From contig CM119379.1 in NCBI GenBank assembly GCA_051294905.1, forward strand, positions 20,274,001 through 20,338,000: DNA of 64,000 nucleotides, written 5' to 3'. Below the pieces are notes generated by a model. The model was not told the DNA's origin, searched no databases, and was given only the letters and a program-made list of their open reading frames with translations. Shown here piece by piece: positions 9,501 through 35,367 of this stretch. Within the stretch, counting starts at the first letter, position 1. Each line of letters begins with the position of its first letter. The position numbers and the translations under genes were made by a program. Origin of the DNA: Botryllus schlosseri (Eukaryota).

Positions 9501-12500
9501 TTAACTGTGGTCATTACTAACAGTTGAATTTGTTTGAAATGAATGCAAATACACAATGTACCACATGCAGGTGCAGTGAAATGGGTGATATCCAGAAGGC
9601 ACCGACAATATCATGAAGACAAAATACGTTGCAGACACATATACCCAAATTCCCAAGATATCAAGCAAGAAAGTACTATACTCACGAAACATTCTTAGGC
9701 TTCTCATCCGCCTGACCTCGCCGTAAGAATGAGGAAGATTGTTTTACCACTACACCCTTGACATCATGCTTTGGGGCTAACGGAAGTCTAAAAATGTAAC
9801 ACCGATACAAACACATGCACATCTCCAAACACAAAAGAATCCTTGTGACTTACAGCTGCAACAAATCGACCTTTACATGCAAGGCTGCCAAGAATTAACA
9901 CACCATACCATAGTTCCGATTTGTAATTGGGAAGCAATCAAACTTCACATGTATTTTAACCACTATCAGGTTCACTGTAGGTTCAAAATTGTGAATAGAA
10001 AATGCTAGATATTCATGACGGGACTCCTGGAGGGACAGAACTTCCGTATACAATTGAATAATAAATTCATATTGAAAAATAGTAGGCTACATTGAGCTTA
10101 GGCTATCTGCCGGCCTCGATTATCGAAATTTCATGCATGTGACCTCATAATTGGTGATACGACTGTTGATAGGCTATACCAGGGGTGACCAAACTGCAGA
10201 TCGCGAGCCGCATGCGGCTCTTTCCGCATTTGACTGCGGCTCTTTAATGATTCCACACGCGTTTCGTCCATTTTGCTAGAGAGGTTTAACCTGATTATAA
10301 ATTGATGCATTTTATCGCGTATTAACAATATGCGTATTGTTTTCGTGTTGTTTCTTTCCTTATGGTTTACGCACGACTGTTCGCAATTGAACTCTCGAAT
10401 CGAGATCACATAAACGTTTCACCCGCAACAATGGATGCCTGATCAGTGATCGTGATCATCAATCAATGATAATTCATCGTGTTCAACAATGAACTTGATA
10501 ATTAATTACGCCAGCGCAGGTCACAATTCTTTCAGGGCTAGCAATGGTGAATAAGGCTTTTCCATTTGTATTGTAAATGCTAGCAATAACTGCAGAGTTT
10601 GGCCAAGGAAAATTTCGTCGAGATTACAGATTACCGATCCGAAATCTTCCCTAAATTCTCATCAGCACTGCCCCGCACTGCTCAGAGGTCATAACAGCCC
10701 GATTTCAAACACCTTGCAGCCTAGGTGGAGACGTGCCATATCACCACACAATAATAAACTTCATTCGACAGCCTACATCCGTATTTTGGAAATTTTCTGT
10801 TGTGGCTCTTTTAAAGCTAAGATTTTTGACATGCGGCTTGCGCATGAAGCAGTTCTGCCCACCCCTGGACTATACAAATTTCTTCTGTTTTGTTTACTAG
10901 TTGCTGACCATTACCCCGGATGCGAGTCAGCCGAAAATATTCATGATCATGATGATTCGTTAAAACCTACAGAATGTTCCCACCCACCTAACCTTATTTT
11001 TCTCGTTATAAGATATTGATGCTGGCATATATGGGTATTTGCTATTAAATTATTACTATTCAACTTGTCTTTGAATTAATTCAAAGTAAACTGCCTCCAC
11101 AATACATACAAACATGTATATATAACGATACAAGTCAAGTCTCAATTCTCGAAATTTGATCAAGCAGCATGTAAACGGGCCGAACTGAATACCGGTATGG
11201 ACGGTTAATCACATGTAATAGCACACATTTAAAAAATTCACCTCAAATTCAACTACACCGTAACACAGCTGCAGGTTCTATAATTATAGAGTGTACAGAT
11301 TTTATCAATTAAAACTACTTGAGAACGAATTTATAGTCAAAAGAAACACCAATCCCATTGCAGATCGAAGTATGAAATAGGGATTTTACTTTGCATGTTA
11401 AACAAAACACCAATGAAATTGATATAATAAGTAACGAGTAACGACAAGACCTATGAAGTAGCCTACGTATTCTTAATTCCTTCCTAATCGTATCAAACAG
11501 AAATATAAAATTGAACTCATGATCCCAATATATAGGCTACCCAACACACATAGCATGCATGATTTATGAGATGAATCCTTTGGAAAGGTCGTGCTCCTAG
11601 TGCTAGTATTGTTAACAATCTCTAATCAGGCCCAGCGAACGCAAGAGAATGTAAAATTGGAGTTAACTGAGATATGGGTGTTTCAAATTTAGGAAAGATT
11701 TCTCATATAATTTACGATACCTTGATTCTTCCTCTTCCACACCTTCCTCCATTTCCGCGGTGTCATGATTGCAATTCACACTTTTACTGTGTTCATTTAC
11801 ATTCATCAGTTGGTTCGGAGTCCACTTGATGAATAGGGAATCCAGAACTTGATGCAGAGACAAGTATCCGTGGATTGGTGTCATCTCCTCGATCTGATAA
11901 GAATGAATGGCTTTTAACGGTCACACAGTTACTCTGTAGTGCCAATTTCCGATTACTCGCCACTCTGATACTTCATGGCTTGGTGTGCAGCGCGGGAATA
12001 ACTAGGCTACTGTGCTGGTAATTATATACCAGATACCAAAATCTGGATACAGGGAAAGCAAATACGCTTGACAGGTTTTACAATGAGATTCGATACAGTT
12101 GGCAATTTCCTGTAGTAGGAGCTGTTATTTCAAGACCAATACCACATTTTCTCACATCATAAGGTCACTGTCACAGAGGCCTCGACACATATCAAGGTGC
12201 AACATATGTAAAATGTACATTGACACCAAAAGTAATACCAATTTCATGTGTTCAAATTTTAAAAGTGCTTTTACAAGTATGACGCTTCCACAAGAAGGCG
12301 AGTATCTCCAAATGATCTATATAGACTCTCAATTGAAGCCTGTGCTGCAGTGCAGTCTTTCAATTTAGCACAGAGGGGGAGCTGATCAGTGATCATTACA
12401 TACATTTATGGCATTTCAACAAAAATACACATTCTAGGATCCAGTATATTGTAATAATTGTAAGATAACTTGGCATAACTAAAGAAAAATACATCACGAT

Positions 12501-15500
12501 ACTCACCGGCTGTACAACTACATTATTTTTTCCATACAGTAACGTTGATTTGGAGTTTTGATGTAATGATTCCACATAGTCTCTGAAATTACTTCCTGTG
12601 CCGGTAGCGTTGCCAGACTTCTCTGGTTCCGTTGATGAATACTTTGAGAGGGACTGAAGCTTTTTACGGCGTCCTGAAGGTGACTGGTCCTCGTTTCTAC
12701 TAAATAAATTAGTACATTGCGGCCAAACTCAAAATACTAACGTCACATAGGCAAGGAAAATTAATACATCATTTCTAAAAAAGTTTGTTCAATCAAGCAG
12801 AGTTGAGGCAAAAAGAATTATTGAGTAAAGTTTGTAGCTTATCTACATTATCGGCTATACATTACTACAGTACGGGAGTCCAAGATGCAATATTTTGCAT
12901 CGAGATGACGGCTACACAGTAAAAATGCACAATGCAGCAATTGAAACTCTATGCTACCGTGTATAATGGCCACAAAAAACTTTGAATAGCTAGTAGCTAC
13001 TACACCTTTGAAGGCTCTAACTCAAAGCGGCTAAAGGCTTCTCACATCTATTGGCATACGAGTGCAATAGATCAATGTCAATAGATTATCAGAAGTTCCA
13101 AGCCAAATACCAAAATAACCAAATGTAACCTTTTCCCACCTGCAATGAAGTTTGTGCCTTTGCAAAAGCTCGTCAGCCGGAGGGTCTGACCAGTAGTGAT
13201 CTGAAGTTTTCATTTTTGTGTATTCAAGAGCACACGGACCAACTGTAAAACAGAAGATACATCCGAAGACAAATCAATAATAATCCAGAAAAATGATTTG
13301 TTCAAATTAAAATTTGCTACACAAATCTGATCGGACGTTTTAACATGAAGTAATATTCATGTTCATCCATTACTAAAATCAGAATAGAGAAATAGTAAAG
13401 AATCATTATTCACCTAAAAGCGAAGACAGAATGCGTCCTCGCACAGGATCAGAAAATATCGAATCCCTCTCATAATATTTTCTGAAAGAAACATCGATCT
13501 TCATTTGATACCAGAGAGCGAGACGGAATATCTTACGCGCTGTTGTCAACCAAGAACTCCAAGATTTCGTCTAATTTCTTGTCGGTCAGTGCAAGTCTCA
13601 CCCAAATATATTTCAAATGTTGAAGTTGCAGTGACTGGGGCCGAACGACATTTCCTTTTTTTCCGTTTTGAGACAACTGCCTGGAAATCATTTGCAAAAT
13701 ATAGAATAAATTTACAGACTGGTACACCCCAAACATTTGTGAATATTTGCAAACTCAACAAACTTCCTGATTATAGAAAGATATATTTCCAGCAACTATT
13801 GACCAATTGAGAACAAATAGAAAGTTGACGAAGCAGCCTTGTTAAGTAAATGCAATTGAAATAATAATAATAATAATATGAAACTACATCAAAAACTAAT
13901 TATCCACCAACCTATGCAACTATTCACAATTAATAGTAGGCTAATCATATGGATCAACGTGATTTACTAATTTCACCAATAATAGCAATAACCATAGTTT
14001 GTGTACCTTTCAATAGTAGATTGAGTTTCTTCAATTTTAGTAACTAATTGAGCTATATCGGGCAACGATTTTCCGACTTTGTTGAAGAGATTAGCGATTG
14101 AGTTGCTTCTCAAAAAACCTGCTGTCCTTTTTTTCAATCGATTCAGCAGGCACGAGTGTATTGTTACTGCAAGATAAGGATTTAAAGAAATTTCAAATCG
14201 ATATAGAAAGCACGAGTAGCTTATGAATATAAGGATCTATTTCACTTATCATAAACATAACTTCAGGGATATCAGTTCAGTTCGGCTTACTAGAAATTTC
14301 ATCACGATACAATGAAAACCTAGGAAGTAGTCAAAACGAGTTGCTAGGAAAAGGGGAAATCCAACCAGTCGAGTTTATGGTCAATCAGTATGAAACAAAA
14401 CTTATAATTCTGGTGAGAAAATGAGTATGGCAGTGAACCGAAATACATTCTTCGGCCTTTGTAACAGGAGTGAATGTGTTGATACAAACCACAAGTAGCC
14501 TATGCAACAGTGAAATGCCCATACAGTAATGTGAAGGGTTTCCAGTTTCCACACACTTCTACATCAATAGCAGCAGACAAGAATGGCTACTCACTGCAGA
14601 GCCGTAAAACGTGTTCACTTTCTTCATGGACGAATTTCTTGGTCACCGACTCTTCCATGATTGCTTTCACCTATATACATAAATATGAGACAGACAGCGA
14701 TTTGGCATATGCACCTTGATCAATGATATTACAGCCAAGTGAATATATTATCATTATATAACAATCCTCTTTTTAAAATTAAGCTTAACCAGCAGGCTGG
14801 GCCGCACCGGTCAACTGATTCTATAACGTTACCTCAAAATCTGTGACCTTTTTTCACTTGCATGATTTGTTAAGCGTTATATCATATTATGGATCATACA
14901 TATTCTATTCTTGCAACTATTTTATTCGCAAACAACGGAAATGTCAAAAATACAATGATTGGTTATAAAAAGTGAAAACAGTGGCTCTAACGACCATGGA
15001 AGTTGGTATATTTCTATGCTTCCTTTGTTTTAATAACAGTCTGGTGTTTATGATACAGCAGTGCCTTCACGGATATAAAATTTCAATTATATTTTTGTGT
15101 AACCCTTCGATTCTTCATGTAACCTGCATATGGCGGTTTTGAACTGGCATCGGTCTTTTTTCCCCGTAAAACTCAATGTCTGCCATCTCGAAATGGGGTG
15201 TCAATGTCACCAACTTCATCTAATGGTGAGTAGAGTGAAACTACAATACCATTTTCGGATGGTAATAATGTGGCTTATGAGCATTCTTGGCAATTGCTGT
15301 ATTGAGGGATTATTTAATAAAGTATAACTGGAAGTCTCAGAATTTGTTTGAAATATATAACAAATGAACTTGATTACATTGCCTTGGTATGCTTTTCCAA
15401 GTCTCATAAAACAGCCTGAACCTTCAATATAATGGAGATCCTTAGTGTAGAACATAAATTATTCATCCGTTATAGTCATTCAATTCTATCAATGATCACG

Positions 15501-16547: not shown

Positions 16548-19500
16548 ATGTCTGGAGCGTCAATGAAAGAGCTAAACGTCAATTATAGAAATGATGGCTT
16601 TGCGTCGCCGCCACCGTCAAGCACTGGAAAGGCAAGCCGCTGAAGCGCTGAAAGTAGAGGAAGGATCAAACGACACAGTAATGCTATACATCTTATAATG
16701 CATATTGCCTATCATTATGTTGTTGATTCTAACGCTACAACCATATTGTCAGGTAAAAGCTTCATGGGTTGAACTGAACTTCAGGAAGAGAGAATGTGTG
16801 AAATTTATACCTTGTGGCGAAGGACTACAAAAGTATATTTTACATGTATTCTACGCGCGAATAGAATCTTATGAACTAGAATTGTTTAGGTGCGGATGCG
16901 GAAGATTGTTGTCTTCCCATGACCATCTTTACAAAGAGAAGGTACACTTGGATGAACAGAACGTGCGGCCAACAACCGTAACCCTACAAAATGAGCTGAA
17001 AGAAGCAAAGGGTGTAATTCGCGAACAAAATGTGTCTAGCTTTATACAAGTCAATGGCGAAGTGGGTATACCTAGCTGTGTATCAACAAGACTACACAAA
17101 AACAGGGAAATGCACGACCATGGGTAAGCAGACCTGAGTCATGAATGATTAAGAGTTGTTAAAGTTAAGACAGCTTGTTATTGTGGTTGCGATCGATGCA
17201 GACCGGTACGATACATATATAAAATTATCCAACAATCACATGTGACTACATCTGAATCAATAAATGAGCTTAGCCTGCTTGTAAGTTGATACATGTCATT
17301 GAAGTCAATTACATATGACAATATCCCTGATTGGAATCTCCGTCCTTTTTTTGAAATAAATCCTGCGTGATAGAAGCTTTTTTCCGCGTGACAGAGTCAA
17401 CTTTGCGGCGTGACAAGCCAGGTTACTGACTTCAAATGACTGTGTTAAGCCAGTGGCAGGAGATCAGATGGTAATGGTTAGCAACTGGTAAGGTGCAAGT
17501 ACCAACAGACAGTAATCAACAGATCCTGGCTCGAGGATTAGGTCAAAACATTATATACCACATACCAACTGGAATATAGCATTTGGGGTGGCTGAGAACA
17601 TTGACTTTTTTTCAATTTTTTTTAATGAAATCAACGACCCGTGGCGGCGTGACCGCGTGCAACTGGCGACCAAGTCGAGGTGATCCTGCGTGCCTTGGAC
17701 ACCGATTCCATACTGGACAATATCAATAACTTAAATTATCTTTTCACAATGGTTGCAGTAAAGTTCCGCAGTTGGTTACAAAGATCATTCTTTTGATTTA
17801 GGCTGGTTTTTCAGTGTTTTAGATCGCATTTCTAAGGAATATTAAATGCAGCCCAATATTCAACTTCAGATATTTGAACGATGCGAAATGGAATGCAATT
17901 CAACATACTTCCACTTTCCCTACTGACGCATTTGGAACACTGGAATACCAAGGCACTGGAGAGGGTGATAAATCTCAGGTATGAATAAGATAATAATATC
18001 CACATAGACTGTGTATATTTTGCAATATTTTCTGGTCTTCTGTTTGCTTAGGGGATATTCACCAGAGATGTTTTTTTTGCAAGCGTTACAATCTATTTGA
18101 TCACCATGCCAATAGGCTAACCTGGTCCTAAACTTTATATCGTGTGATGTGGTACGTAGGCCTACTTTTCAAAGTTGTTAGAAGGATGATTGCTTTATTA
18201 TCAAGTTACTCAGTAAATCGGGTAATATTCTTGAAGCGTTTTGACACTTTCAATGCCACGAATTAAATTCTTTCAAGAGAGTCTGGGAGGTACATTTCTT
18301 CAATATACAATTGAATAATATATTCATATTAAAATATTTTTGGAGTCAGGGGTAATTGTCAGCAACTGCGTCCATACTTTTTGATCATTCATATTAAAGG
18401 GGCACTGCACTCTAAAAATGATGTGGTCTCAAATTGAAGGGCGAAACGAAATAAAAATTTTGGCCGCAGCCGTTTTCTTCAGAACGCCATGGTAATGGAG
18501 CTGCAATTTATTGAAATCTCGATAGCAACTTCACGCTCCAGCAGTCACGCAGAGATCGAACTTTATATATTTGTCAGCCAATGCTATAAAGGAAATATTT
18601 CGTACCCGCCCTATGTCCTAAAGAAATAGAATACACTAGGCCCGATTTTGACATAAATCTCCTGACTGAACATCTTCCGTTGAACGCGGTATCTAAACCA
18701 CCTTGGCGAGTACGACATATTTTCTTCATAATATTGGCTGACAACGATATAAAGTTTGATTCAAAAATTTTATTTCGTTTTGCCCTTCAATTTGAGACCA
18801 CATTTTTAGAGTGCAGTGCCCCTTTTAAGCCTCTATAGAAATATGATATTGGCACAGCATAAGCAATCAAGCATTTTCCAGCACCTGTCATTATTCTGCT
18901 TGTTTTTCTGCAAAGCATATGTTATGCATCCGGAAGTAAAATATTATGCTATGCTTGTCATTATGACGAGGTCTACATTGTGGCAGATGTTCTACGCGGA
19001 TTTACTATAAAACCATAATCATAATTTATATGTCGTATCTAGACTGGTTGATATTTGTGTGTTTAATGGTTGACCAATATATGCTTTATGTAGATAATTG
19101 ATAAAATCTATCGATTGAATTATGGATTTGATCAAAAGTGTGGAAATAGCATTGATTGTAGTAGTTATCAATCACGATTTATATCAAAATGTCATCTCAA
19201 TTTCTGATCATAATTCTTAGTGCAAGAATGTTAATTTTTGGCATTTTATGATTCTCAAACAAATTTCTTAGACTGACGGCATGTTTATCTCGTTAATAGC
19301 AACCTTTGATGCCATGCCATGCATGAGCATTTGAAGAATTGCGGTATCTGCATTTTTCAGTACATACGATTAGCGCATGACACACCTCCAGACCTTGTAT
19401 TGCGTTTGCTCACGGAGGAATGGGGTCTTCAGAGGCCAAAGATGGTAATCACTGTGCATGGCGGAGTACATAATTTTCAGTTACAGCCGAAAATGCAGAG

Positions 19501-22500
19501 GTAGCCTAATCATTGCTCTAATCCCGTGTCAGTGGCTTGATTATATATTATCTCTATTCCAGGATTTTCTGTGACGGATTAATCAAGGCAGCTAAAACCA
19601 CTGGAGCATGGATTATGCTGTTTGGTCTTAATACAGGTGATTTCATTTCGGCTTTGGGTGTATTAACGAAATTGAGTGTGGTATTTAGTAAAGGCTAATC
19701 TTAGATGACATTAATACGGGTACGGCACAGTTGTTGATTACGAAATACAGTAATGACCCAACCACTATGGATATATTATTTCAAAACATACAAGGAATTC
19801 TACACTCTTGAGAACGACATGAAATCCCTACCTCCTTATTATAAGGTGAATAGTGAAGTAGGCTACTAAGTATTGGGAACTCCTATAAATTTTTGATGAA
19901 TAATTTGATAAGCATATAAAATGCCTTTTTCAACAGGTATTGGTTCAATTGTCGGAAACGCTCTGAAAGAGCACAAGGCACAGTCCCGGGGCAAAATCTA
20001 CAGCATTGGAGTTGCGCCCTGGGGAGTTGTTGCTAATAGAGAGGATCTTGTTGATTCACAGGTCAGTGATGATCGATTAAATTAGACAGATGAATGAATG
20101 GAATTACCTGTAGGAATCTGAAAGCGCGATGTTTGTTTGTTTGTACGTATCTCCATGGAAAAGGTTTTTGTAGTTATCTCCCATGGGAGAGAGATAGATG
20201 GTGACAGTGTGATTATACTGGACTCTTCAGTATAGCTGTTTATCTTTTGTCAGGCTATCAGTTCCTATCAAACCATGAGTGACCCGTTGAGCAAAGGCGC
20301 TGTTCTGAACGCTGCACACTCTCATTTTTTGTTGGTCGATAATGGGACCGAGGGAAAATATGGGACGGAGCTGAAGTTCCGGAGAAAACTGGAAAAGAAA
20401 ATTTCACTGCAGCCGATCAATCAAAGTACGATATGTCGTACGCTATATGTCGGTTTAATCTAGAAATTTTTGATTAGATTGAATAGTGAGATATTACAAG
20501 GTGGTTAGTATCCACTACGAAGTAATAACCTATTTATCACATCAATATTTATGCTGTGTAAACACCATTCAAAATTCGAAATTTGGACTTTCTGTACCTG
20601 TGATAGATGACAGTGACACAATGGGATTACCTGACTATTATAATGCAATATTTTAACTACTCCTGTTTTATTGCCATTTATTGACGAAGTGGCAATGCAG
20701 TTGGACCAAATTTTTTGTAGTTTTCATAAAGCTAAATTCTTCTGCATTCGTCGTTTATTCCTGTTGGGCGGAATGTGACATTTCCTTGTGAAATGAAACT
20801 ATCTGCATTCTGCACGGCATTTTATTTTGTAAAAATATTCTAATAATTTAGTGTCAGTTCTGTGCATGCATAGGATGGAGCACTTTTAGTTCAAATCTCA
20901 GTGAAATTTACATAATTGTCACTCTGGTTCACAGGGCGCAAACACACTATTGATGTAATATTCAAGTCTATTAGGTGTATGTCATTATGTTATCAATTAT
21001 AATGAGATGTAGTAGGTGTTAATCACATAATAACAGAGGCATTATGATATTGGATATGTGTAATTGTAAAAATTGACACCATTGACTGATATTTAATAAT
21101 TCTCCTATTTTAGAACATGGTGGGAAAATTCCTTTGGTGTGTCTTGTGTTAGAGGGCGGCAAGAATATGATCAATGTTGTTTTGGAGAGCGTTCGCCAAA
21201 ATCCCCCGATCCCCGTCATTGTGGTCGACGGCAGCGGCAGGGCCGCAGACCTCCTTGCGTTTGCTCATCAGTATGCAGAAGACGATGGGTGCGTATCCGT
21301 TAATTAGCGCGTAATCGCATATAAAGTCTGCCGGGCCGTTGTGCCCAATGCCTAATTTCCTATGCATAAAAGATGTACAACCATGGCTTAATCGTTACTA
21401 AAGGTCAGTCGGTCATTTGAATGTTGACTACTTCTTTTGATTCTACAGTACCGGTAACTATTTCCGTCATTATTAATGGACAGGCATCTATTCTTTCTAA
21501 TTGGCAAGAGATAATTATTCCCTCAGCTGGAATACAATAATTAACCTTCTTGCTGACTTTGAAATTTTAGACTATTAATCTTCAATGTGAACTCATATGA
21601 TCAATCTGTTCGATATATATTATGGATTCAGTTAATTTACGTGTTCTGTTTTCATAATGGCAAAACAATACATTGAATTATCAAATTACAATGACCACAT
21701 ACCTTGTAATGCATTATTTGTCTATTTATTTTGTTTTCGAAAATCGATCCATGTTATTGATTGTTCAATTCTGTTTAGCACCATGATGGATGAGCTGCGC
21801 GTGCAATTTTTAATGACAATTCAAAATATATTTGCTTGTGAACAAGATCAAGCAAAAATCATTTATCTGACAATCATGGAATGTATCAAAAAAAGAGATC
21901 TCGTGAGTAGGACGCATAGTATAGTAGGATTTTGTTGATTGTTACCTGTAACTTCATTGGAACCAGATCACAATATTCCGGTTAGGACAAGGACAAAGTA
22001 ATCATAATGATTTGGATAACGCTATTCTTACTGCCTCCCTGAAAGGTAAGACTTCCCTTGTATAATATGGATGACATGTAATAGTTGTCTCCTCTAGGGA
22101 AAAGAACCTCGGCACCGGATATGCTCAGTCTTGCTTTATCGTGGAATCGAATTGATATTGCGAAGAGTCAAATTTTTGTTTATGGACAACAATGGCCTGT
22201 ACGTTGGTAATTAATGATGTGTATTACATGTCTTGACGGTGTGTGATACATACTTGACCTTCAAATTGAAAACGTGAATGCGTTCTATTTCATCTATTTA
22301 GCACCTTCTGTGTGTTGATTATGCGGAAGGACTTCTGATATCGCAACCTCATTAGTCTTTATATATATTTAGTCATTACGCTAGGTGTGATATTACGGTC
22401 ATGGATGGTGGTATTGGAAACTTAGTTGTTTACAGTGTTTGAGCCAAGCCCCAATGTCCAAAAGTCTAGTTATTAAGTCTATAGCAATGTCATTATTCTG

Positions 22501-25500
22501 AGTATCAAGTTCGGTTGTGGTTCTAAACTCTACCCTGAAACAGATATGCCCTACACCTGACTACCCATATGTCACAGTTGACTCTTTTCATAGTGATATT
22601 CAACCCTTTATGATATTGCATATTGTCTTCATCTGTCTGCATCGAAAGTGAGAAAGTTGGTCTCTGCACTCTGAATAAGCAGAACTCGAGCTATCAAAGA
22701 CCATTTATAATTCTTGATTGAAGTTTAACCCCTTGTTCTGCATCTCCCACTAACTACGGGCATATTATTTCCTCCTTGATCTATTCTGAGAGAAAGTCAA
22801 AATTTTTTCAGCATGTAAGCATATAATGGTGAAATTTTCTACTATGGAGGAGTGTCTACAAGCTAAACGTGGTTGGTGCTTTTCAGGTTCTATCTCTGGA
22901 GCAAGCAATGATGGATGCTTTAATTCAGGACCGCACCGATTTTGTGAAATTACTCATGGAGAATGGAGTCAGCATGCACAAATTTTTGACGATTTCAAGG
23001 CTGGAGGAACTGTATAACATTGTGAGCACTTTGTGACCATATAACAGCCTTGACAATTTTCTCAAATTCCTAGTTTTCAGAAACCTAAACAATATTTATT
23101 CTTTAACAGAAAAGAATGCCTATCCATCTGCTCTATTTGCTGCAAGACATCCGGAAAAATATCACTTATGGAACCCGTTTCAACCTAGTCGAAATTGGAC
23201 AGGTATTTCGATTGTCAGCATATCAACGAACTCTATCCACTAGATTTGGTGCTTGATAGCTTTGAATAAACAAAACACTATTAGTAATTGCGGACTGTGT
23301 ACATTTTGTACCTTTCTATGTTGCAAGTGGCACTTGTGCGCTTCCGATGCCATAACTTTATAATTTCAAAAAGTAACTTGTTTCTAGGTAGTTTAACGAA
23401 AATATTTTAAAGACATAGACTCTTATTCTCGTTAATACTGATGTAAGCATATAGCACAGTTGCCTATGTTTGATCCGAGCTACTTGATGAATATGATTAG
23501 AGGAAGTCGTTCTATGACAAGTGTATTCAAAGTAGCCAATAAGTGCCAGACTTTGGTTTCACATCGACTTTGTCAAAACTCTGCAATGACAATGATAAGT
23601 ATGTATACAACTCTGCTTGTTAGTTGCTACCACCAGCGAGTTCGCAGCTCCTTAGTTTACTCATAAAATGAAGACACGTTATGGTTTGTAGTTTTGGATA
23701 TATTTCCTGCTATGACACAGACTCTTTAGGAAGACATGGTCATGGCAGTTACATCCAACACCCGAATTTCTTCACTGATATAAACCTCTACTTGGCCGGC
23801 TGCAGCAGGCTATACATTTGTACTCCCTAATTTATTAAACAAACTTGTGGGATGTCGTATGCTAGCGCAATGCATGCGCTTACACAGCTGCGCTTACACA
23901 GCTTTTTAATTGTAATCCAGAAAACCCAGGGTAGGGGGAGTTGTGCTACAAATTTCTTAGTTCTCTGGAGGCTACATCTGATCAATGATTGTATAAATGC
24001 CGCGGCACGCTTAAAATAAAATCCATGATTGCATTCAGCTTGTGGAGTCTTTGATGGGTGGCGCTTATCGTTGCAATTACACGAGGAGAAGATTCCGTAA
24101 TTATTACGCATCTCAAACAAAAACAAGCTTGAAAAAACCGTCCAGCTTCTCGAAGCATTTGCTCCCTGCTAACCTGTCAAAGCATGATGTAAGTAGCTAT
24201 ATTATTGGTGATTTTGCCAACACGTTTACCACTGCTTCATGTCTGGTTTGTATGTCAAGATGTCTTCCTACGGCAATGAGATGAGCACCCTCGGATCGAC
24301 GAAGAAATGCGAAGCTGAAGCAAAAGAAAGTGTTGTCATGTCGTGCGTCTCGCAGTATCCCTTTCATGAGCTCATGGTGTGGGCAGTACTTATGAAGAGA
24401 CAAAAGATGGCGCTTTTCATGTGGCAGCATGGTGAAGAAGCTGTTGCTAAGGTAGGAGCTGGAACGGTGTAGCGTAGGTATCTAATTCACGCTCTCTGTC
24501 AATCAGTTAGGCTCAAGAAACTGGTCATTAGAATGGAAACCACTTCGTTACATTGTCATGTTTGTTTTGAAATATACAATTGGGGATTCTTGAGGCTGCT
24601 TATTGGTATCCTGGGCTGGGATTCTTGAGGCTGCCTATTGGTATCCTTGATTTATAGGATGATTTGGACAGTCAATTCCTAATACCCAGAGTATCTAAAA
24701 TCTTATTATAATTTAGGACATTCTTTTTGTGTGAATCAGGGTTTCTTTGCAACGAAACCAGAAAACTAGATGCTTTGAATATCTTTATCTCCTATCCCCA
24801 TATAGAACTGTCTCCTTGCATAGAAAAATTTAGTGTTCTCGTTCATTCGAATTGAAAATGTTGTAAATTATCTTGATATTCCCTTTGCAGTGCGACTTTC
24901 AATTTTGAATGCGATTGGATTCAGCTTTTGTATTTCTTATATTTGCTTCTCTACATTAGTGTTTTGCTCGTAGCTTTGCCAACATGTAGACATTACTCAT
25001 GAATATGGTGTACTTAGATCATTTAAAGTTTGGGTATGTTTACAATGTATAGTATTTAGTCATGTTTCCGTCTATTCTAAGATGGAGTCGAAGAGGTACC
25101 ATTCTTAGGTACTATTGGTCCTGACATTCAAGTATGAAGCTGAATTTTTCCATAGCGATGTGCTGAGTCTGGTAAACTGTGCAATGATATAGTCATAGTG
25201 CATAATTCCTATGACTCAGTTTTACTGGAAAGTAAGTATCAACATCAACTGGAGTCACACTTATGCATATATTTCCTGAATGACCATGGTAGCAATATGC
25301 AAGAATCCCTTGGTTTATTCAAAGTTGAATCGCATGTACAACAACAGGTGAATCGTTTTGTCCCAATTATTGTTTGCAGACCTGTGGACGAATAATTATA
25401 TAATTTGTGATCATACTTGAAATTTCTGCTCCAGGCGCTGGTTGCTGCCAAGTTGTATAAAGCAATGGCTCACGAAGCTGCTGATGATGAATTAGAACTG

Positions 25501-28500
25501 GAAGAAATGGAGGAATTGAAGAAGTATTCCAGGTAATATGGTCATTTCAATAGGTTTCCGATTTAGTTCTACAACGTGCCCGATTTGCCCAGCGAATTCT
25601 GCGACATCGCCACCAAACTGCTGGAAATATGCTACCGAGCCGACACGGACGCCACTCAACATTTGCTGACGTACGAATTGAAGCAGTGGAGCAAGCACAC
25701 CTGTTTGAGCCTGGCCATTGCCGCGCAACACCGCGACTTCATCGCGCACCCGTGCTGCCAACTTCTTCTCAACGACTTGTGGATGGGCGGGCTCAACGTG
25801 CGCAAGAATTCTAGCTTGAAGGTAAGCCGTTTAGGTGATGTAAAATGAGATTTACAGAACACTTAACCGATGCCGCAATTAGGTTGGATTTGTAGGTTAG
25901 GGTTCCACACACTGCTCGACACGAAAGCATCGATACCAAAAATGGGATCCTTAATGATTGTGAATCGTGAACAGTGCCTGAGCCGGGAGGCTTGACAAAT
26001 CCAACAATGTTTATGGTAAATCTGACTCTAAACAGGTGGAAAATCGCGGAATATTTGATGCTGATCAAATTTTAATCGATTGTAATCCCTGTATAATCAC
26101 TCCCTACCTGAATGATAGTACTGAAGCAGATTTCCCTGTTTACACTCCTTACTCTACTGATTATGATATTAGACTAACTACTCGACAGGTTTCATTATTT
26201 AGGCCAAACTAGCCCAAATTTACTTGCGGTTTTACTTACTCGGAAATTGCTACTGCTACTTGCACTCGAGTAGTAATGTCCTGGGTTGTAACCAAGTTAC
26301 AAGGTTCCGAGTCACAAGTCAATGTCACTTTTATAGTTTTGAAAAGTTGAGTCGTTTTCAATTCAAAACCGAGTCAAGTCCAAGTCACGTAGTAGAGTGT
26401 CGAGTCCGAGTTTGAGTGTTTGGACTCGAGTCCGAGTCCAAGTCATTGTGTTGACTGCTCAGTTTCCAGTTCAAGTCTTGAAAAGCCCGCTCTTTATAAC
26501 TCTGTTTGGTGATATCGAATGGTTCGCATTTACAATATGCCAATTTCCTCACTTTTAGCAGTTTCTGGTCGCATTTTCAAGTACCAGTCTCAATAGACGA
26601 AATCCCGATATTGTGGTGGTATTTTGAGAAAATGACTAAAGTCGAGTCATCAGAAAATCGTGACTCAAGTCCCTCGAGTCGAGTCATTACAACCCGGATT
26701 TGTATTTCCGCTCGAGTTCCAACCATGACCTCTTGACCGTCCTGATCGCGCTCTCGAATATTTCCAGATCATTCTGGGCATCGTGTTCTTCCCGTCGATC
26801 GTCATGCTGCAGTTCAAGTCCCTGGAAGAGCTCAAGCTGATGCCCCAGACTGCGGAGGAGTACATGGACGACAGGAGCGACGTCAGCTCGGTTTCGAGCT
26901 CATCATCGTCACTTTCCTCGACATCATCTTCGTCCAGTTCCAGCACGTCCACGAGTTCTTCTTCAGGGCTACAGGCACGACAATGGTTTGGCTAAAAGGT
27001 TACACTCTGTGAGCGCCCTTTTTTTCATTCTATCGCAGAGGAAGCCTGAAGTTGTTGGTCGGGGCGTGAGCGGTTGGGATGATCCAGATCGACTACCCAA
27101 AGACGGTTACTTGCAGCTCATGCTGCAGCACAAGCAGTTGTCCGTCGGGAAAAAGTTCTACGAGTTCTATAACGCTCCCATTACAAAGTTCTGGTTTCAC
27201 ACGATATCGTTCAATGCTTTCTTGCTCACCTTTACTTACGTTATTTTGGTGAGTATCTCTGTCTGATGTATTTGGTAATGGCTGGCAAGGATTTCTCGTT
27301 GTTTTCTAGGTTAAGATGGAGTCCGCGCCTTCTGTTCCTGAATGGTTCATTGTGTCTTACGTGTTCACTATGTTTTTGGAGAAGGTTTGTTTTGAATGCT
27401 TAGTTCAAATTTTATAGAATTACAAATTGGCTTATGTGCTTGATGATTAATCATGTCTGTGCTCAATGTCAGCACGATATTCATATTGAAATAAACCCTA
27501 ATATTTTCGACGCACGCCGGTCCGGGCTGTCGTTGTGAGTGGCAGTGCATTCTTTCATTTGTGTGCCTTGGAGTCAACATTCATCAAAATACACGAACCT
27601 AGTTTGTGCCAACAAGACGAGCACATGCATAATCTAAAAATAGTACCTTGAGATTAAGCCATCTGTTTGCCTCGGTTATTCAAATTTTCGTGCCTGTAAC
27701 GTCGTATTTGGCGATGCAATTCTTGGTATACAATGTTCTTTTCCATTCTCAACTAATCGCAGACTATTCCCCCTAACAACCGTCAGCTTAAAATATTTGG
27801 GTGTATTTTAATATGAATATACTATTCAATATTGAAGCTTGGTATCTCCAAGAGTGTCCTACAATTCACATATGTCTTTGCAGTTAAGAGAAATCGGAGC
27901 TTCTGAGCCGAGTGGTGTGTACAAGAAGATGAAACTGTGGTTGGGGCAATTCTGGCATTTCGTTGACATGACTTTGATCCTGTTATTTTTCGCTGGCTTT
28001 GCTTTGCGTATGAGTCAAGACAGCCAACTTTTGAGCATCGGGAGAACTTTCTACAGCGTTGATGTATCCTTATGGTATATCAGGTTGCTGAATATATTCA
28101 GGTAGGAATAAGGAGATGTCGTACGGGTGCTTGTCTGCATTACTTGAGTAATACTTTCGCTTTATCACCTGATGAAGGAGCAGAGCTCCGAAAGCTCGTG
28201 TAACTATAATAAAGTAATATTCATACAAGTGGACGTTAAACAGGGTGTGGAAGCTATCAAGGTCTCATGTTTATATATACCGTCTGCTATCGGCACAACA
28301 ACGTATTTGAGTAATACAGTAGAATATGCTGATAGTTCTATCAAACTTAGTACGAATAGAACATATAAACGAATATAACAAAACCTATAGTACAATAGAG
28401 TTATGTGGTTAGGGAAATAACTAGAAGTATCTCGGTGATACCGCTCGCAAACCTGTTGTGGGTATGGTCATTAACCATTGTTCTAAATTATCATTCTATG

Positions 28501-31500
28501 GCATTGTACTTTAATTGTCTCATGCTACAGCTATGCCTTTCGTCTTCCAGTGTCAGCAAGTTTCTCGGGCCCTACGTCACAATGGTTGGGAAAATGATGG
28601 TTGATTTGGCAACGTTCATTATCCTTCTAGCCGTTGTACTTGTTAGTTTCGGCATTACACGACAGGTACTACTACCACAATTGCTGGTAACTATTGTAAT
28701 TCAGTGATTTCCTTCATATTTGTTTTTGGAAGGCTATACTTCATCCGAACGAATCGCCCAGCTGGATGTTACTGAAGAATGTGGTTTTGGAGCCGTATTT
28801 CATGTTGTACGGGGAGGTTTATGCTACGACCATTGACCGTAAGTCTAGTGCTAAGAATGTAGGTTTTCTAGTGATCTGGTTGATTCTAGGACTAGGTATG
28901 TGTTTGAAAATTGTTGAATTCAACTCACAATGTCAGTCTATGATTTCAACGCAATTCTGAGTAGCAACGTTCTTTTGACTTTGTGATGTATCAGATGTAT
29001 CATATTGCCAACGGGGTGTACTCTGGCCTTTACGTCGACCATATAGGACCCTGTAGCCCCCCCAACCTGTGACCCCCAACCATCCTGCTAAACTTACGGT
29101 TCTGATAACATTGTCGATTTAATGCTTCGGAAATGAAGTGTGGGTTGTTTCGTTAATTTCAGCCTGCAGCGAGGATAACGAAGATGCGTTATGCGTCGTC
29201 GGTTCTTGGATTGTGCCTACAGCCATGACGCTCTACCTCCTAGTAGCTAATATACTGCTGCTGAACATGCTGATTGCCGTATTCAAGTAGGTTACGACGA
29301 TAACGATGCATCGGAAATTTGAATGTCATCCGGGTTCTTTGCTCATTTAGCAACACTTTCACCAAAGTTAAAAACATTTCTGACAAGATCTGGAAGTTTC
29401 ACCGTTACGGGATGATCGTGGAGTACGAGTTTCGGCCCATGCTGCCGCCGCCCTTAATTGTGCTCAATTACGTTCCGATGATGTTCCGGCAGTTTTTCAA
29501 GAAGCGAAAGAACGCGATATTCAATTCGGACAGGGGACTCAGTGTGTTCAATTTTGTTATTTACTTCTATATATCTTTTCTGACGATTGTTTAAATTCTT
29601 TAGAGCTCTTTCTGGACGACGACGACGTTGAAAAGCTTCACGATTTCGAGGAGGACTGTTTGGACGACCTGTTCCGGAGGAAAGTTCGCGACGTGCAAAA
29701 CAAGGACTCCGGGGCCAATTTTCAGCTTATGTCTTCCAACTGGTTGGAGAGATTCAACGATTACGCCAACGAGTCTGCCGAAGTGAACGCGGTCATCACG
29801 TCGCAATTGCAATCTCTGGAGGAACGGCTTGAAGCTTTGGAAGAGTCGAACCGCAAGGTGGTGTCGATATTCGTTATCGTTTGTGTGACAGTGTCGGAGA
29901 TTTATATTCTGCAGATCATACGTATGCTGCCGAGTTTCTCTGGGTCTACGGCGCGTAACAGCAATCATTCCAATTCCGAGCCAACGTCTGATGAAGCTGG
30001 TAGGAATGAAATCACGTTATTGTGCTATTGGGAGTTATATATATAATGCATGTTGTATAATATTGCTATTACAATTGAATAACATATCCATATGGAAATA
30101 AACCCGACTGATGCTAGTCGGGGGCAATCGTCTGCAACGAGTAAACATTTCTAAAGAACTGTGTGTATAAACTAGAGTTACCATACATCCTCTTTTAAGA
30201 GGATTTGTCCTCTTTTTTTTTTACTTTTTGAAAGTGTCCTCTGGGACGCCTGAATTTGTCCTCTTTTTGAGAATTTTGGTTGAATGTACGTGGAAATTGG
30301 ACTGAGATATAGGAAATCAGCGGCCAAGCAACTCTGCGACGTGATTTCCCGGACTTGAGCCAGAAAAATGACCTTTTTTTCTAGTCAACCGATCGCAAAG
30401 TCGGAAAAATTTACCGTTTTTCCCGGATTTTACTCCAGTATTGTAACGTAGTATTGTAATTTCATCCGCCCTGCACATACTTGTCTGGTCTACTCTCTCA
30501 CTGATCCAAGCCATGGCAAACTTTTCAGCTTGTTGATGTTATATCTGTCAGATTTAGGGTGCATGAAAAATCGAATGAGATTCCGTCTCGGCCGCATACG
30601 TCAGGATTCGGAAATGAGTACGTTCAGTGACTGGAACCCGTCAAACGGTATCCTTCAAAGGTAGAGCGTTAACCGTATTGAAATTTTAGACTTTTACGAG
30701 GCACATTTATGTTTCTCAGGCTGAAAAGCGTAACCGCGAAAAGGCGGGAACGCCACGCTTCTGAGCATCATTCTAAGGACACCAGCACTTATGATCATAC
30801 AATACGTAAAACAAGCTCTACAGGTAAATTTTGTCAATGCTGATTGCACATTGTACAATGTACATGTACAATGGTACATCCACTTTTCGCAGGCAATTTG
30901 AGAGGCTCGAAGCAAAATCTCGCCACCGAAGGCCGTAGTACGACGACGCTAGCCACCGTTTCGAGTCATACGGCATGCAGTCTACGTACGCTGAGCAGAT
31001 TGTTTATAGACCCTGAAGAAAAGGCCATGTCATGTCAGGTATGCGTGAATCATAGTTTAACTGAACTGTGAAAGCAGGTGTTACACTTGCTTATGCTGAA
31101 CTTGCCACAGATTTTTCAAGATTTTGGCCACGAACCCCAAAATATTTACGAATTTATATTATGTAACGAGACGTATGGGTGTCATAAAGGATAAAGGAAT
31201 TTATTATTTCATTTCACTTCAATGGGCATTCGTGAATCGTAACCAGGAGTCCACTACATTTAAGAGATTCACTTTTTTGCTTTGATTCAGGACTTGCAAT
31301 CCACGAAAGGAAACAAGATACGGGAACATCGCGGATGTCGTTTGGACGACGTTGCTGTGTCTGGGAGTGAATTTTTCCCGTCCGATTTTGTCGATGAAAA
31401 TACGCCGGGAGAAATCAGGTTGGTGATCCCACAGATTGCATCTGAGGCCTTGCCGTTTTTTATTTTTTTTTGTAAGCTGTTGTGTTTTCTTTCAACTGGC

Positions 31501-34500
31501 GCCTGCGGATATCTTGTCGGTATGATTTTGCTGCAAAGGTTGTCAAAGTAGTCGTCGTTGGTGCTCCTGTAGAAGTAGATTGTTAATTTATACTCGAGTG
31601 CAGGTAGGAATGTTTCCAAGACATGTCGATGCTACTGAGAGTAGAAAAGGATGATTTTCAGTTTGCTCTCAGAGATGGTCAATGTAGTCAACGTTGGTGC
31701 TCGTGTAGAAGTAGATGTAGTGATTTCCAAGTAAGTCATTATGCAAGTAATAAGGCCTAGTTTTTGCTGGAAAACTGTTTAGAAGTGGTCTAAAATCAGA
31801 ACCACTTTAGTAAGCAGTGCAAGTAGGCAAAACATACTTGTGTACACACCTGTCTACATGTAACTGCTCTTTCAAGGCACAATCCGTCTTCCATCGGGAA
31901 ACAGCAATGCACCAGCATGAACTACAACAGCGACACTTCCACGTCGAGTGGGAGTGAAACTGAAGTGTCGACAGTTTCACGCAGAAAACCGTTTGTGCAG
32001 CGATCCGCGAAACGCAGACGGGCCGCTTCAGATCTGCCCTCCTTGCTGATCAATAGTCAGAAGAGTTCGTTTGATTATGACGTCGATTCTAACCAATTGA
32101 CGCCGATTCAGGACGAAAGTCCCCTGTCGACAAGGATACAACGAAAGTTTACAAGAGGTGATACTCAAGGATGTTAGGGTGTAATTAAAAAAAGAATTAG
32201 CGGTTAACGTTTTTCCATTTCACCCAATTTCATAAGCCTGGCATCGGGAGATTCCGATAAAGCTGCGTGTTATCTTTGCTTTTTGAGATATCACTATTTC
32301 AATATTTGCTTCATCAGCAATCTACAATTGTATTGAGAATTTTGAGATACTTACAAGCTTAATTTAAGATATAATGTCGGTGTCGGATCTGCAACCATAT
32401 GTTCATGTACTCAAGCTTGACAATTATAAACAAATGACCGTATTTTTAGAATGTCCTGTTAGAATCTTTGTTCACTAATATTTTAAACCAACTGGGCAAA
32501 TTTCTCTTTTCTTGAAAACCATACTGAATTTCAGTACTCATCTGAACTAGAACTGTTTAGGCTGGTAATATTTCGTTTTCTAAATTGTCAATTTTGCTGA
32601 AATTATATTCCAGGTCACAACTCCTTTCCTTTACTCAATTTGGCATTGGAAAGCTCTGTGGATAAAATTGCTATGGAGTCATCTACACGAAAAGCTCATA
32701 CCCCCGTCGGTACAATTAGCAATTCTTTTAAAAGTGAGTAGGGTATTGTAATTGAAGTCGGTCTGGAAAATTATTGCTAGTAACCGGGAATATTGGTATT
32801 TTTCAGACTCTGCTTTTGCCAGAAGCCAGACACCTTTGTCTCTAGTGTCACCGGTTGGGTTTTCGATGAATCAGTCCCAATACAAAAGTGTAACCGACTG
32901 TATTGACACGTCAAAATGGCATGATGTGAATACTGCAACTACGCGGCCGCCTTCGACCCCGTTTGAAAACTGGTGGAACAAGGTATTGTCTTCTTTAAAT
33001 GATCATAATTGTCATACTGCTCTTGGTGTCACATTGCAAGTGATTGTTTTCTTCAATACTTTGATTATCCTCCAATGATAGAAGACTTATTGACCACTGA
33101 GATATGCAGCACATTTCATATTCATAATGACATTCTGCGATCATTCACTATATCCCAGGGGTGGGCAAACTTTTGAGCTCGCGGGCCGCATTCAACATCT
33201 GAATCCATTCGCGGGCCGCACTATATAAAATTGGGACTATAAACCAAAACGCAATATTGGTATTTGATTATATAGTGAGGACACGGAGATAATATATATG
33301 CTTATTTACAACAATCCACACATTGCTTTGATGATATCGTACAAGACTCAGAAACAGTGGCGAGATTTCATAGGCTGGTCGGCCTCAATAACCAATTTGT
33401 CAAAACTATAGCGATGAAAGTCGATTGTCTCGATTCTTAAAACAGGATTGAAAGTTAAATCTCAGAGCAGCGATCTGTTCAAAGATTTACTAATTCAACT
33501 TTTGGTTCAGTTCCAGGACACACAATGCTGACAGCATCATAACCATGTTAGCTTCAAACACGCTACTACTATGTGTAGATAAAATATAAATATCCTAATT
33601 CTATGCATACATACAACGAATCTACCTAAGACACGCGCGAATCGTTTGTATAAGCACATCACTGACATAATTAAAACTGGAGTGGCCAATCTGAAATCAC
33701 ACTCGTGATTCGAATTATGTCAATCTCGTTTAGGATTTCTGTCATGTTTAGCAGATGAAACCTTTCAAACTATGTGGGCTGATGGTTTGATGGCATGGAA
33801 GATTACGACTGTGGATGAGAGATTTTTAAATATGAAATTCAGACTAAATAATTCTGAATAGGATGTAAATCGCACGAAGCGCGAAAAAAATTTTCAGTTA
33901 AGCTCAGCTTCGGGCCCCTGACTTAGAATTATCATGGTGAAATAGGTTAAGAAAAAGTTTAATCAAGTGTCTGCTTTAATCCGATATTTAGTACGCATTT
34001 TATCAATATTTTTAATAAGTTTCTTTATACTCTCGCGGGCCGCACAGAACAGTGTGGCGGCTCGCGGGCCGTAGTTTGCCCACCCCTGATATATCCAATC
34101 GCTTCACAATCTTCTTCAAATTGTGAAATTTACGAAAGTTACTTGAACCATGAAAATATGATGGCCATATTGTAGAATCTGGGTATTATATATGTTCTAG
34201 TTCCCTCACTTGCCCAGGCCAGTTTTGTACCTGCCAAGTTCAGTAATCCCCTGATTTCAAATATTCCCCGATTTACATCTGTTATCGCAGTAACTTCACG
34301 ATATTACGTCGATTGAACCCCACCTACTTTTAATTGCCATTGGCTGAAAATGTAGTAACCAGGCAGTTTTTATATTTACCCTCACAGGCTCACTGAATGA
34401 GGGACAATAACTGGCCAAGTTTGACTTCCTCGATCTCTTAAATTGCGTAATATTCAGCCATTTGTGACATATTCATATTTTCGACGAACAGCCTCCGAAT

Positions 34501-35367
34501 TTCATGTCAAGCCAGCCATCGAAACAGCAAGCAATACAGGAACGGCTATCACACGACGAATGGGATGGGGAAATGTGCGTTTCTTGCATTTTGTTTACGT
34601 TTTGTGACGAGTCTTGATCAGTTTCATCTTGCCAGAACCGAGTCCTCCAAACCTCGGAAAGCGAAACGACACCGCCGGACAAGTGCGATGTCCAACAACA
34701 GTTCGTCTTCCATGAAATCAATGTCTTCCGCACTGGGACAATCCGGGCCGCGTAAACATAGACACAGAAGGAAAAAGAGGAAAAATCCAAAAGCGGCCAC
34801 TGAAGTATGATGATGCGTTAGTGAATGTGAAATCACGTGGTGATAGAAACTCGAAACGACTGACTATTTCCACGACTTTACAGGGATGTGATTGGAAATG
34901 CGAGTGAACGGAGGTGTTTCGAGTAGTTGCAACGCTTGTAGCGCAGTAATATTCTAATTCAGTGCAAGTAGATATAGACCTTAGTTAACCTCTCGCAGTC
35001 TGTGAATTATGTCTGTCAAGAGTTGACTAGCCACGTGTGAATGCGCTTCTAGAAAATGAGGCAAAATAGTGTTAGCATTATGTAGATTGATTTATATAGT
35101 TCATGGGTTAATGTTCTGGCAGCTCAGTCGGCTCTAACTTGCTGTATTATTTATCTGAACCAGCTGGGAATTTTGGAAGAGACAACGCACCCTTCTCTGA
35201 GATTGCCTACTACTACTACTGATGCTGTGTTTGCCGTATCGCCTACCACTTCCAACGCGTCTTCTACGCGAGACTTGAATATCAACAACAGCAGTAACTT
35301 CAATCCACCACCGCCAGAAAAGTACGTAGAGGCAATAATCAAACTCTCACGCGATTGCAGTTTTTAA
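16548..35367 (+). CDS. TRPM3: TRPM1/3/6/7-class transient receptor potential melastatin channel, ~30 exons, no alpha-kinase or NUDT9H domain
   Basis: Phase-consistent exons give: [34 protein letters not shown] (17870-17978), [15 protein letters not shown] (19361-19500), [109 protein letters not shown] (25593-25821), [23 protein letters not shown] (S4), [22 protein letters not shown] (pore), [20 protein letters not shown] (S6), WKFHRY and LPPPL (TRP box), coiled coil, long tail, stop at 35367. Symbol is the nearest recalled match; probably co-orthologous to TRPM1/3/6/7. Confidence 0.95.
18398..18824. mobile_element. Fold-back MITE with TTAA flanks (Kolobok-like)
   Basis: Near-perfect ~50-bp TIR, AGGGGCACTGCACTCTAAAAATG..TCTCAAATTGAAGGGC and its reverse complement. 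TTAA at 18394-18397 and 18825-18828. Inner IR TTTGTCAGCCAAT / ATTGGCTGACAA. Confidence 0.75.
24582..24648. repeat. Tandem duplication of a ~36-bp unit
   Basis: GGGATTCTTGAGGCTGC(T/C)TATTGGTATCC occurs twice in tandem. Confidence 0.8.
26281..26697. mobile_element. GAGTC/GACTC-rich MITE; reverse-oriented relative at ~39260-39570
   Basis: Ends CTGGGTTGTAA / TTACAACCCGG with many CGAGTC/AAGTC motifs. 39540-39571 (TTGTGACTCGGAGCCTTGTGACTTGGTTACCACCCTG) is the reverse complement of the 26281-26320 start. Confidence 0.55.
28161..28203 (+). ncRNA. Minimal type I hammerhead ribozyme-like motif (Penelope-like element remnant) in a TRPM intron
   Basis: TTATCAC-CTGATGA-A-GGAGC-AGA-GCTCC-GAA-AGCT-C-GTGTAA. 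Core CUGAUGA and GAAA, 5-bp stem II, palindromic AGCU in place of stem III, UC cleavage site, stem I CAC/GUG plus UUA/UAA, then AATAAA at 28208-28213. Confidence 0.7.
30173..30440. mobile_element. Partial TAGGGTTACCA-family hAT MITE
   Basis: Starts TAGAGTTACCATAC, has TGTCCTC subterminal repeats and the GACCTTTTTTTCTAGTCAAC core, as in 48248-48608. Far end not found. Confidence 0.6.
33156..34088. mobile_element. hAT (Charlie-like) non-autonomous element, 933 bp
   Basis: 16-bp TIR CAGGGGTGGGCAAACT / AGTTTGCCCACCCCTG, subterminal CGCGGGCCGC repeats, 8-bp TSD CTATATCC / ATATATCC (7 of 8). Confidence 0.9.

Follow-up and report, generated by a model that had tools for sequence, protein, structure and literature searches.

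We analysed a stretch of 64,000 nucleotides (nt) from the Botryllus schlosseri genome (assembly GCA_051294905.1, contig CM119379.1, positions 20,274,001 to 20,338,000 of the forward strand), which we call the window; all coordinates below are positions within it. An intron of a TRPM gene in this window contains a 149-nt insert with a minimal hammerhead ribozyme motif. We believe that this insert is probably the 3′-terminal piece of a retroelement of the Penelope-like element (PLE) type, which brought the hammerhead with it, and that it now sits in the TRPM intron as a passenger relic. The insert is flanked on both sides by a short direct duplication, its sequence is present in many copies in the genome, the hammerhead motif is conserved across this family, and the host intron is spliced normally. 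A first-pass annotation of the sequence had recognized the hammerhead and proposed that it could regulate the TRPM gene. Our results support the recognition and speak against the regulation.

The hammerhead motif

The motif is the 35-mer CACCTGATGAAGGAGCAGAGCTCCGAAAGCTCGTG at 28166-28200 on the + strand, and it occurs once in the window. All of the conserved nucleotides that define a hammerhead core are intact (C3-A9, GAA, A15.1-U16.1 and, at position H17, C28197). Helices I (3+3 base pairs, bp) and II (5 bp) can form; for helix III there is only a 4-nt palindrome, whose pairing takes a second molecule. The parts of the motif are as follows.

28162-28164 with 28201-28203, + strand: extension of helix I, with U28165 bulged, giving 3+3 bp in total
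28166-28168, + strand: 5′ strand of helix I, pairing with 28198-28200
28169-28175, + strand: core C3-A9 (CUGAUGA), read from the sequence
28176, + strand: extra unpaired A between A9 and G10.1, read from the sequence
28177-28189, + strand: helix II hairpin GGAGC-AGA-GCUCC, 5 bp (28177-28181 with 28185-28189, loop AGA)
28177 with 28189, + strand: closing pair of helix II, G10.1-C11.1 (G28177-C28189)
28190-28192, + strand: G12, A13 and A14, read from the sequence
28193-28196, + strand: palindrome AGCU (A15.1-G-C-U16.1), which can form helix III only between two molecules
28197, + strand: C17, with the cut predicted at 28197/28198 from hammerhead numbering
28198-28200, + strand: 3′ strand of helix I

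On re-reading the sequence, the coordinates, gene and geometry that the first-pass annotation had given for the hammerhead and for an AATAAA hexamer downstream of it all hold.

We searched the window with a liberal hammerhead descriptor. It called for CUGANGA, 0-1 inserted nt, a helix II with 3 bp or more and 3-12 nt in its loop, GAA and an A...U palindrome 4-8 nt long; the cleavage position had to be H (A, C or U), and helix I had to span 3 bp or more. This descriptor gave 0.003 matches per simulated 64 kb, and in the real window it returned the site at 28166-28200 alone.

Boundaries and copy number of the insert

The hammerhead lies in a segment with clear edges, which comprises the following features.

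28141-28154, no strand: left copy of the target-site duplication, TACTTGAGTAATAC, a direct repeat
28155-28303, + strand: putative retroelement insert, 149 nt, bounded by the duplication and of high DNA depth
28292-28303, + strand: AC-rich 3′ end of the insert, GGCACAACAACG, 106 nt beyond the predicted cut
28304-28317, no strand: right copy of the target-site duplication, TATTTGAGTAATAC, a direct repeat identical to the left copy at 13 of 14 positions

The pair 28141-28154 and 28304-28317 is the sole direct repeat of at least 9 nt in the intron, and it brackets the segment of high depth. An exact flanking repeat of at least 11 nt around the motif was found in 0.5% of simulated introns. The undivided target site is predicted to read TA(C/T)TTGAGTAATAC, in a single copy. 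The hammerhead starts 11 nt into the insert (after 28155-28165). At the 3′ junction the insert ends in ...AACG and continues directly into TATTTGAG, an AT-rich target with TATT at the junction. We read the duplication around 28155-28303 as the target-site duplication of an insertion. The segment thus displays the footprint of retrotransposition: a 14-nt duplication, an AT-rich target and an AC-rich 3′ end, the position of this end being known from the present copy.

To assess copy number, reads and contigs from four runs were placed on 26900-29600, with 82% likeness as the lower limit. In run X1, the summed word depth of DNA contigs was about 20 on unique sequence, and around the insert it was as follows.

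28083-28173: summed depth 1,401 (run X1)
28174-28264: summed depth 10,736 (run X1)
28265-28355: summed depth 5,805 (run X1)
beyond 28355: baseline again (run X1)

When these bin depths are prorated, the edges of the repeated segment agree with 28155 and about 28305. Depth over the hammerhead peaked at 14,895, at position 28184 (run X1). Depth over the insert was about 500-750 times the single-copy level, as expected for a member of a large genomic family, although summed contig depth is a rough measure and not a strict copy number. In the same run, at least 80 distinct contigs cover the insert at 28155-28303, and 49-81 distinct contigs carry a variant letter at single positions of it. The insert is present in roughly hundreds of genomic copies. 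The statement of the first-pass annotation that one copy is visible is correct for the window, where blastn found a single copy; the implication of an isolated copy does not hold for the genome, in which DNA depth shows the sequence to be highly repeated.

Within 28166-28200, the sole difference listed for at least 10% of the copy depth is at position 28184 in loop II, where 58% of the depth has C. The hammerhead is therefore conserved across a family of roughly hundreds of copies. The insert is also found in an independent RNA data set from 2018 (X6 contig 28272-28577). Some of its 31-mers are shared with two other organisms and a marine metagenome, and words from the flanking locus are not among them. 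Scans of metagenome and viral contig collections with the pattern of this hammerhead family gave 0 matches.

Affinity with Penelope-like elements

Minimal hammerheads have been described in the flanking repeats of PLEs (Cervera and De la Pena, 2014; PMC4209133). Four features of these ribozymes emerged outside the descriptor used in that work: they occur in large families, they have a nucleotide that falls between position 9 and position 10.1, they have a G10.1-C11.1 pair, and their positions 15.2-16.2 are palindromic (PMC4209133). The motif at 28166-28200 and its family display all four of these hallmarks. The extra A at 28176, which the first-pass annotation took for a departure from the canonical core, is instead a conserved hallmark of PLE minimal hammerheads. 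The analogy with Penelope that was drawn at the same time was well chosen. By these hallmarks the motif is a minimal type I hammerhead of the PLE kind. A further source on this class is Lunse, Weinberg and Breaker (2017), as cited in PMC6765202.

The likeness to the minimal hammerheads of metazoan PLEs extends to most of the structure. Both are of type I with helix I open, in both the nucleotide between A9 and G10.1 stays unpaired and is followed by the G10.1-C11.1 pair, and in both helix III is cut down to the palindrome A-GC-U, which pairs solely between two molecules. Both also belong to large dispersed families, which in the known systems consist mostly of single truncated copies. The helices differ. 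Helix II is 5 bp here, shorter than in the Schistosoma families (7-8 bp) and in Drosophila virilis (6 bp), and helix I is here 3+3 bp with a bulge.

The anatomy of the insert can be compared with that of PAc, a Poseidon PLE of Anolis carolinensis (PMC11167929). In PAc the open reading frame (ORF) begins at the hammerhead and the cut lies 26 bp into it. An AC-rich stem-loop 111-118 bp into the ORF, or 85-92 nt beyond the cut, is where reverse transcription begins, and ATT in AT-rich DNA is the preferred target of the endonuclease. The insert in the TRPM intron likewise has its hammerhead at the start of an ORF, ends at an AC-rich site roughly 90-110 nt beyond the hammerhead cut, and lies in an AT-rich target with ATT at the junction. 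They differ in the distance from the cut to the AC-rich end, 106 nt here versus 85-92 nt in PAc, and in the ATG, which here falls inside the CUGAUGA box rather than where helix II starts. This ATG, at 28172, opens a 68-codon ORF (28172-28378, + strand) that stays open through the whole insert and past it, and the ORF has no Pfam match. By analogy with the Anolis PLE, it may be a remnant of the start of the parent element's ORF.

The host TRPM gene and its intron

The host intron and the exons on either side of it are as follows.

27884-28101, + strand: TRPM exon, S3-S4 segment (joints of spliced RNA contigs at 27382>27882 and 28098>28548; translation)
28102-28550, + strand: GT..AG intron of 449 nt that hosts the insert (sequence and spliced RNA)
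28551-28665, + strand: next TRPM exon, S4-S5 linker and S5 (joints of RNA contigs; reading frame)

The donor GT is at 28102-28103. Reading through it gives TTC AGG TAG, with the stop TAG at 28103-28105. Position 28101 is joined to 28551, with GT..AG ends, by an X6 RNA contig and by a single read of X21, and the 449-nt intron is spliced normally in the assembled transcripts. An unspliced X6 RNA contig spans 28272-28577 at about a quarter of exon depth. The hammerhead is in sense to the TRPM pre-mRNA and lies just past the donor, about 64 nt downstream of it, as the first-pass annotation had described.

The gene was identified from the exon at 27884-28101. Its homologues have TRPM SLOG, TRPM2-like and Ion_trans domains, and the exon peptide aligns inside Ion_trans. 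In an exhaustive HMMER search of a library of 1.84 billion proteins, the best homologues of the exon peptide were 47-49% identical; a word-indexed search with the 72-amino-acid (aa) exon found no homologue. Since the TRPM homologues are at most 49% identical, they are too distant for a comparison of orthologous introns. The species' own TRPM and its close relatives seem to be absent from that library. The X6 contigs delimit six short GT..AG introns of the TRPM gene: 27248-27308, 27385-27883, 28102-28550, 28666-28732, 28839-29162 and 29287-29350.

Predicted activity on the TRPM transcript

Based on modelling and on analogy with other elements, any cleavage of the pre-mRNA by the single motif is most likely negligible. 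The best hammerhead-compatible fold of 28155-28215 has a predicted energy of -9.6 kcal/mol, compared with -15.0 kcal/mol for the minimum free energy (MFE) fold, which is not a hammerhead. In the predicted MFE fold, one hairpin (28160-28166/28171-28177) buries G5-A9 and another (28180-28187/28193-28201) buries the cut site. The folding stability of the whole insert is that of shuffled sequences (z = -0.14). Published work on other species agrees with this picture. PLE minimal hammerheads had no detectable cleavage as single motifs in vitro and low activity as dimers (PMC4209133), and the PAc hammerhead needed its own protein in order to cleave, with no cleavage ends turning up in public RNA-seq (PMC11167929). 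The raw RNA reads that fall on the insert are all imperfect matches, on both strands, and come from other copies. Neither pile-ups of read starts or ends nor loose poly(A) ends were listed for them, a negative of no weight given zero depth on the TRPM exons.

A separate observation concerns the loop II base at 28184. The present copy has an A there, which contributes one more base pair to the hairpin 28180-28187/28193-28201, the competitor that buries the cut site.

Two further features bear on polyadenylation.

28208-28213, + strand: AATAAA hexamer inside the insert, read from the sequence
28243-28250, + strand: GU-rich tract GGGTGTGG, downstream of the AATAAA

AATAAA occurs 47 times on the + strand of the window, five of these in sense in the gene span 19300-35000. 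The probability of at least one AATAAA in 449 nt of this window is 0.28. A hexamer with a 28% chance of occurring in any stretch of this length lends little to the idea that polyadenylation at 28208 yields a TRPM isoform lacking its pore, though with the GU-rich tract downstream the sequence would permit use of the site. As a rule, U1 snRNP suppresses poly(A) signals lying some 100 nt from a 5′ splice site.

The origin of the insert

We propose the following model. Target-primed reverse transcription would have placed the 3′-terminal piece of a PLE-type element, now 28155-28303, at an AT-rich site in the intron, with 14 nt of the target duplicated in the process. The piece would carry the minimal dimer-type hammerhead of the element and then about 106 nt up to the AC-rich point at which such elements end. 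It could be either the tail of a 5′-truncated PLE or a short non-autonomous element mobilized by PLEs. The role of the hammerhead in the parent element is presumably to process multimeric RNA of that element. In the TRPM intron, it would be a passenger that is removed with the host intron by ordinary splicing. We infer both the PLE parentage and the mechanism of insertion from the features described above, and we consider this explanation of the insert likely.

Several results weigh against this explanation. The Rfam hammerhead models (Hammerhead_1, _3, _II, HH9 and HH10) gave no match at the gathering score anywhere in the window, and no match at E ≤ 10 on the 401 nt of 28000-28400. Thus, the covariance-model search that the first-pass annotation had suggested as a check came out negative. 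This is expected, because the motif does not have the helix III hairpin that those models expect. A sensitive blastn search found no second copy of the insert in the 64-kb window, and an ORF and Pfam scan of the window found no ORF for a PLE reverse transcriptase or GIY-YIG endonuclease, its only finds being the cyclophilin-type and metallo-beta-lactamase-type ORFs described below. The link to PLEs therefore rests on the hallmarks of the motif and on the anatomy of the insertion. The size of the family is taken from contig depth, with the roughness noted above. As to inactivity, the raw RNA runs, both bulk and single-cell, had zero depth on the TRPM exons, and the argument draws on folding predictions and on published work on other species.

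A closely related possibility, which we consider rather unlikely, is that the 149 nt make up a whole, discrete non-autonomous element of a retrozyme-like or SINE-like kind, mobilized in trans, and not a 5′-truncated copy of an autonomous PLE. Non-LTR retrozymes and the SINE-like elements of Schistosoma are also short non-coding mobile units with a type I hammerhead and a short palindromic helix III, and a 2026 preprint derives animal non-LTR retrozymes from the pLTRs of PLEs (10.64898/2026.07.22.740005). Depth over the insert is roughly uniform after bin correction (about 11,000-15,000), which fits many copies that share both ends. However, depth would be just as uniform if the present copy were truncated and most others longer. 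Retrozymes and SINE-like elements mostly have tandem arrays or a pol III promoter, as well as canonical loop-loop contacts, whereas the insert is a single dispersed copy with a duplicated target. It has no tandem partner, the tandem arrangement typical of retrozymes being absent and only one copy being present in 64 kb. Moreover, the 11 nt ahead of the hammerhead (28155-28165) leave no room for a promoter.

The regulatory proposal of the first-pass annotation was that the insert has been co-opted. Dimer-dependent self-cleavage, polyadenylation at the AATAAA or both would truncate the TRPM pre-mRNA after S4 and yield either a pore-less isoform or a concentration-dependent brake on expression. 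There is a precedent for this idea in the intronic hammerheads of amniotes (Rfam Hammerhead_HH9 and HH10), which also lie in sense orientation in an intron of a protein-coding gene. The site in the TRPM intron has some of the parts that such a device would need: a fully intact core in sense, 64 nt past the donor; an AATAAA at 28208 followed by the GU-rich tract at 28243-28250; an immediate stop upon read-through (TAG 28103-28105); other family copies that are transcribed on both strands and are possible dimer partners; and the unspliced RNA contig at 28272-28577, at about a quarter of exon depth.

We nevertheless regard co-option as very unlikely. The insert is one of hundreds of copies and has a target-site duplication on both sides, so its presence does not need selection at this locus, and the intron is spliced in the assembled transcripts. 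An intermolecular helix III of 4 bp is weak, and the hammerhead-compatible fold falls 5.4 kcal/mol short of the competing local hairpins. In this context, the core and the cut site would be sequestered, and the published PLE and PAc hammerheads are weak or protein-dependent, with no single-motif cleavage and low dimer activity in vitro in the one case (PMC4209133) and a requirement for protein in the other (PMC11167929). The poly(A) part of the proposal meets the same difficulty, as AATAAA is found in sense five times across the gene span and U1 snRNP would be expected to suppress a signal so close to the 5′ splice site. The comparison with HH9 and HH10 also fails in detail. HH9 and HH10 are monomeric ribozymes of the canonical kind, in which a real helix III and loop-loop contacts are present, whereas the motif here does not have a helix III hairpin; each is found in single copy and is conserved between orthologous introns, whereas the motif here lies in a high-copy repeat and has no Rfam match. 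A regulatory hammerhead of the HH9/HH10 type would be single-copy, and the insert is multi-copy.

A more elaborate form of the idea is that the single hammerhead pairs through its AGCU with the transcripts of the hundreds of family copies, so that cleavage of the TRPM pre-mRNA after C28197 would become more frequent the more strongly the family is transcribed. This would be a brake that depends on transposon load, possibly with a PLE protein as ribozyme chaperone. We give this possibility hardly any weight.

Finally, we reject as least credible the reading that an AT-rich intron contains CUGAUGA, a hairpin and GAAA in order by accident: the absence of an Rfam hammerhead match, the six occurrences of a loose CTGATGA...GAAA pattern in the window versus 2.3 expected, and the few accidental matches that a large genome would still give at 0.003 per 64 kb are in its favour, but the low rate of the descriptor, the depth of the family, in which the sequence is kept in at least 90% of copy depth save for one loop base, the duplication on both sides and the presence of three hallmarks of the class beyond those in the first-pass description all oppose it.

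Meaning of the insert

The insert appears to be an ordinary mobile-element relic; a regulatory reading is unsupported and unlikely. As it stands, it is one more dispersed copy of a hammerhead class described in 2014 and carries little weight. It has modest value as an anatomical example, because it is a short insertion with a target-site duplication that is largely intact (13/14). It also brings together in one short insertion the hammerhead, an ORF start and an AC-rich end, which the work on Anolis ties to internal initiation of reverse transcription. By this analogy, it suggests that the Anolis rule on internal initiation may extend beyond vertebrates. If this copy did cleave the pre-mRNA of its host, this would be one of the rare instances in which a host gene is acted on by the ribozyme of a transposon, and nothing here points that way.

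Neighbouring features in the window

The intron just upstream of the same exon (27385-27883) harbours a far more abundant repeat at 27446-27900, in which DNA word depth rises from a baseline of about 20 to about 100,000. This repeat has inverted arms at 27477-27507 and 27790-27820. The loose-end consensus of its other copies is CCCCTGACGAGTGTCAGCCG, which resembles a hammerhead core (CUGAnGA), and the copy in the window has a decayed core-like sequence, CCCCTAACAACCGTCAGC, at 27770-27787 on the + strand. With this hammerhead-like sequence upstream and the motif at 28166-28200 downstream, both introns that flank the S3-S4 exon carry relics of hammerhead repeats in sense.

Two uninterrupted ORFs lie back to back elsewhere in the window.

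42530-44047, - strand: uninterrupted ORF encoding a 505-aa cyclophilin-type PPIase (Pro_isomerase, E = 3.5e-45)
44458-45927, - strand: uninterrupted ORF encoding a 489-aa metallo-beta-lactamase/DRMBL protein

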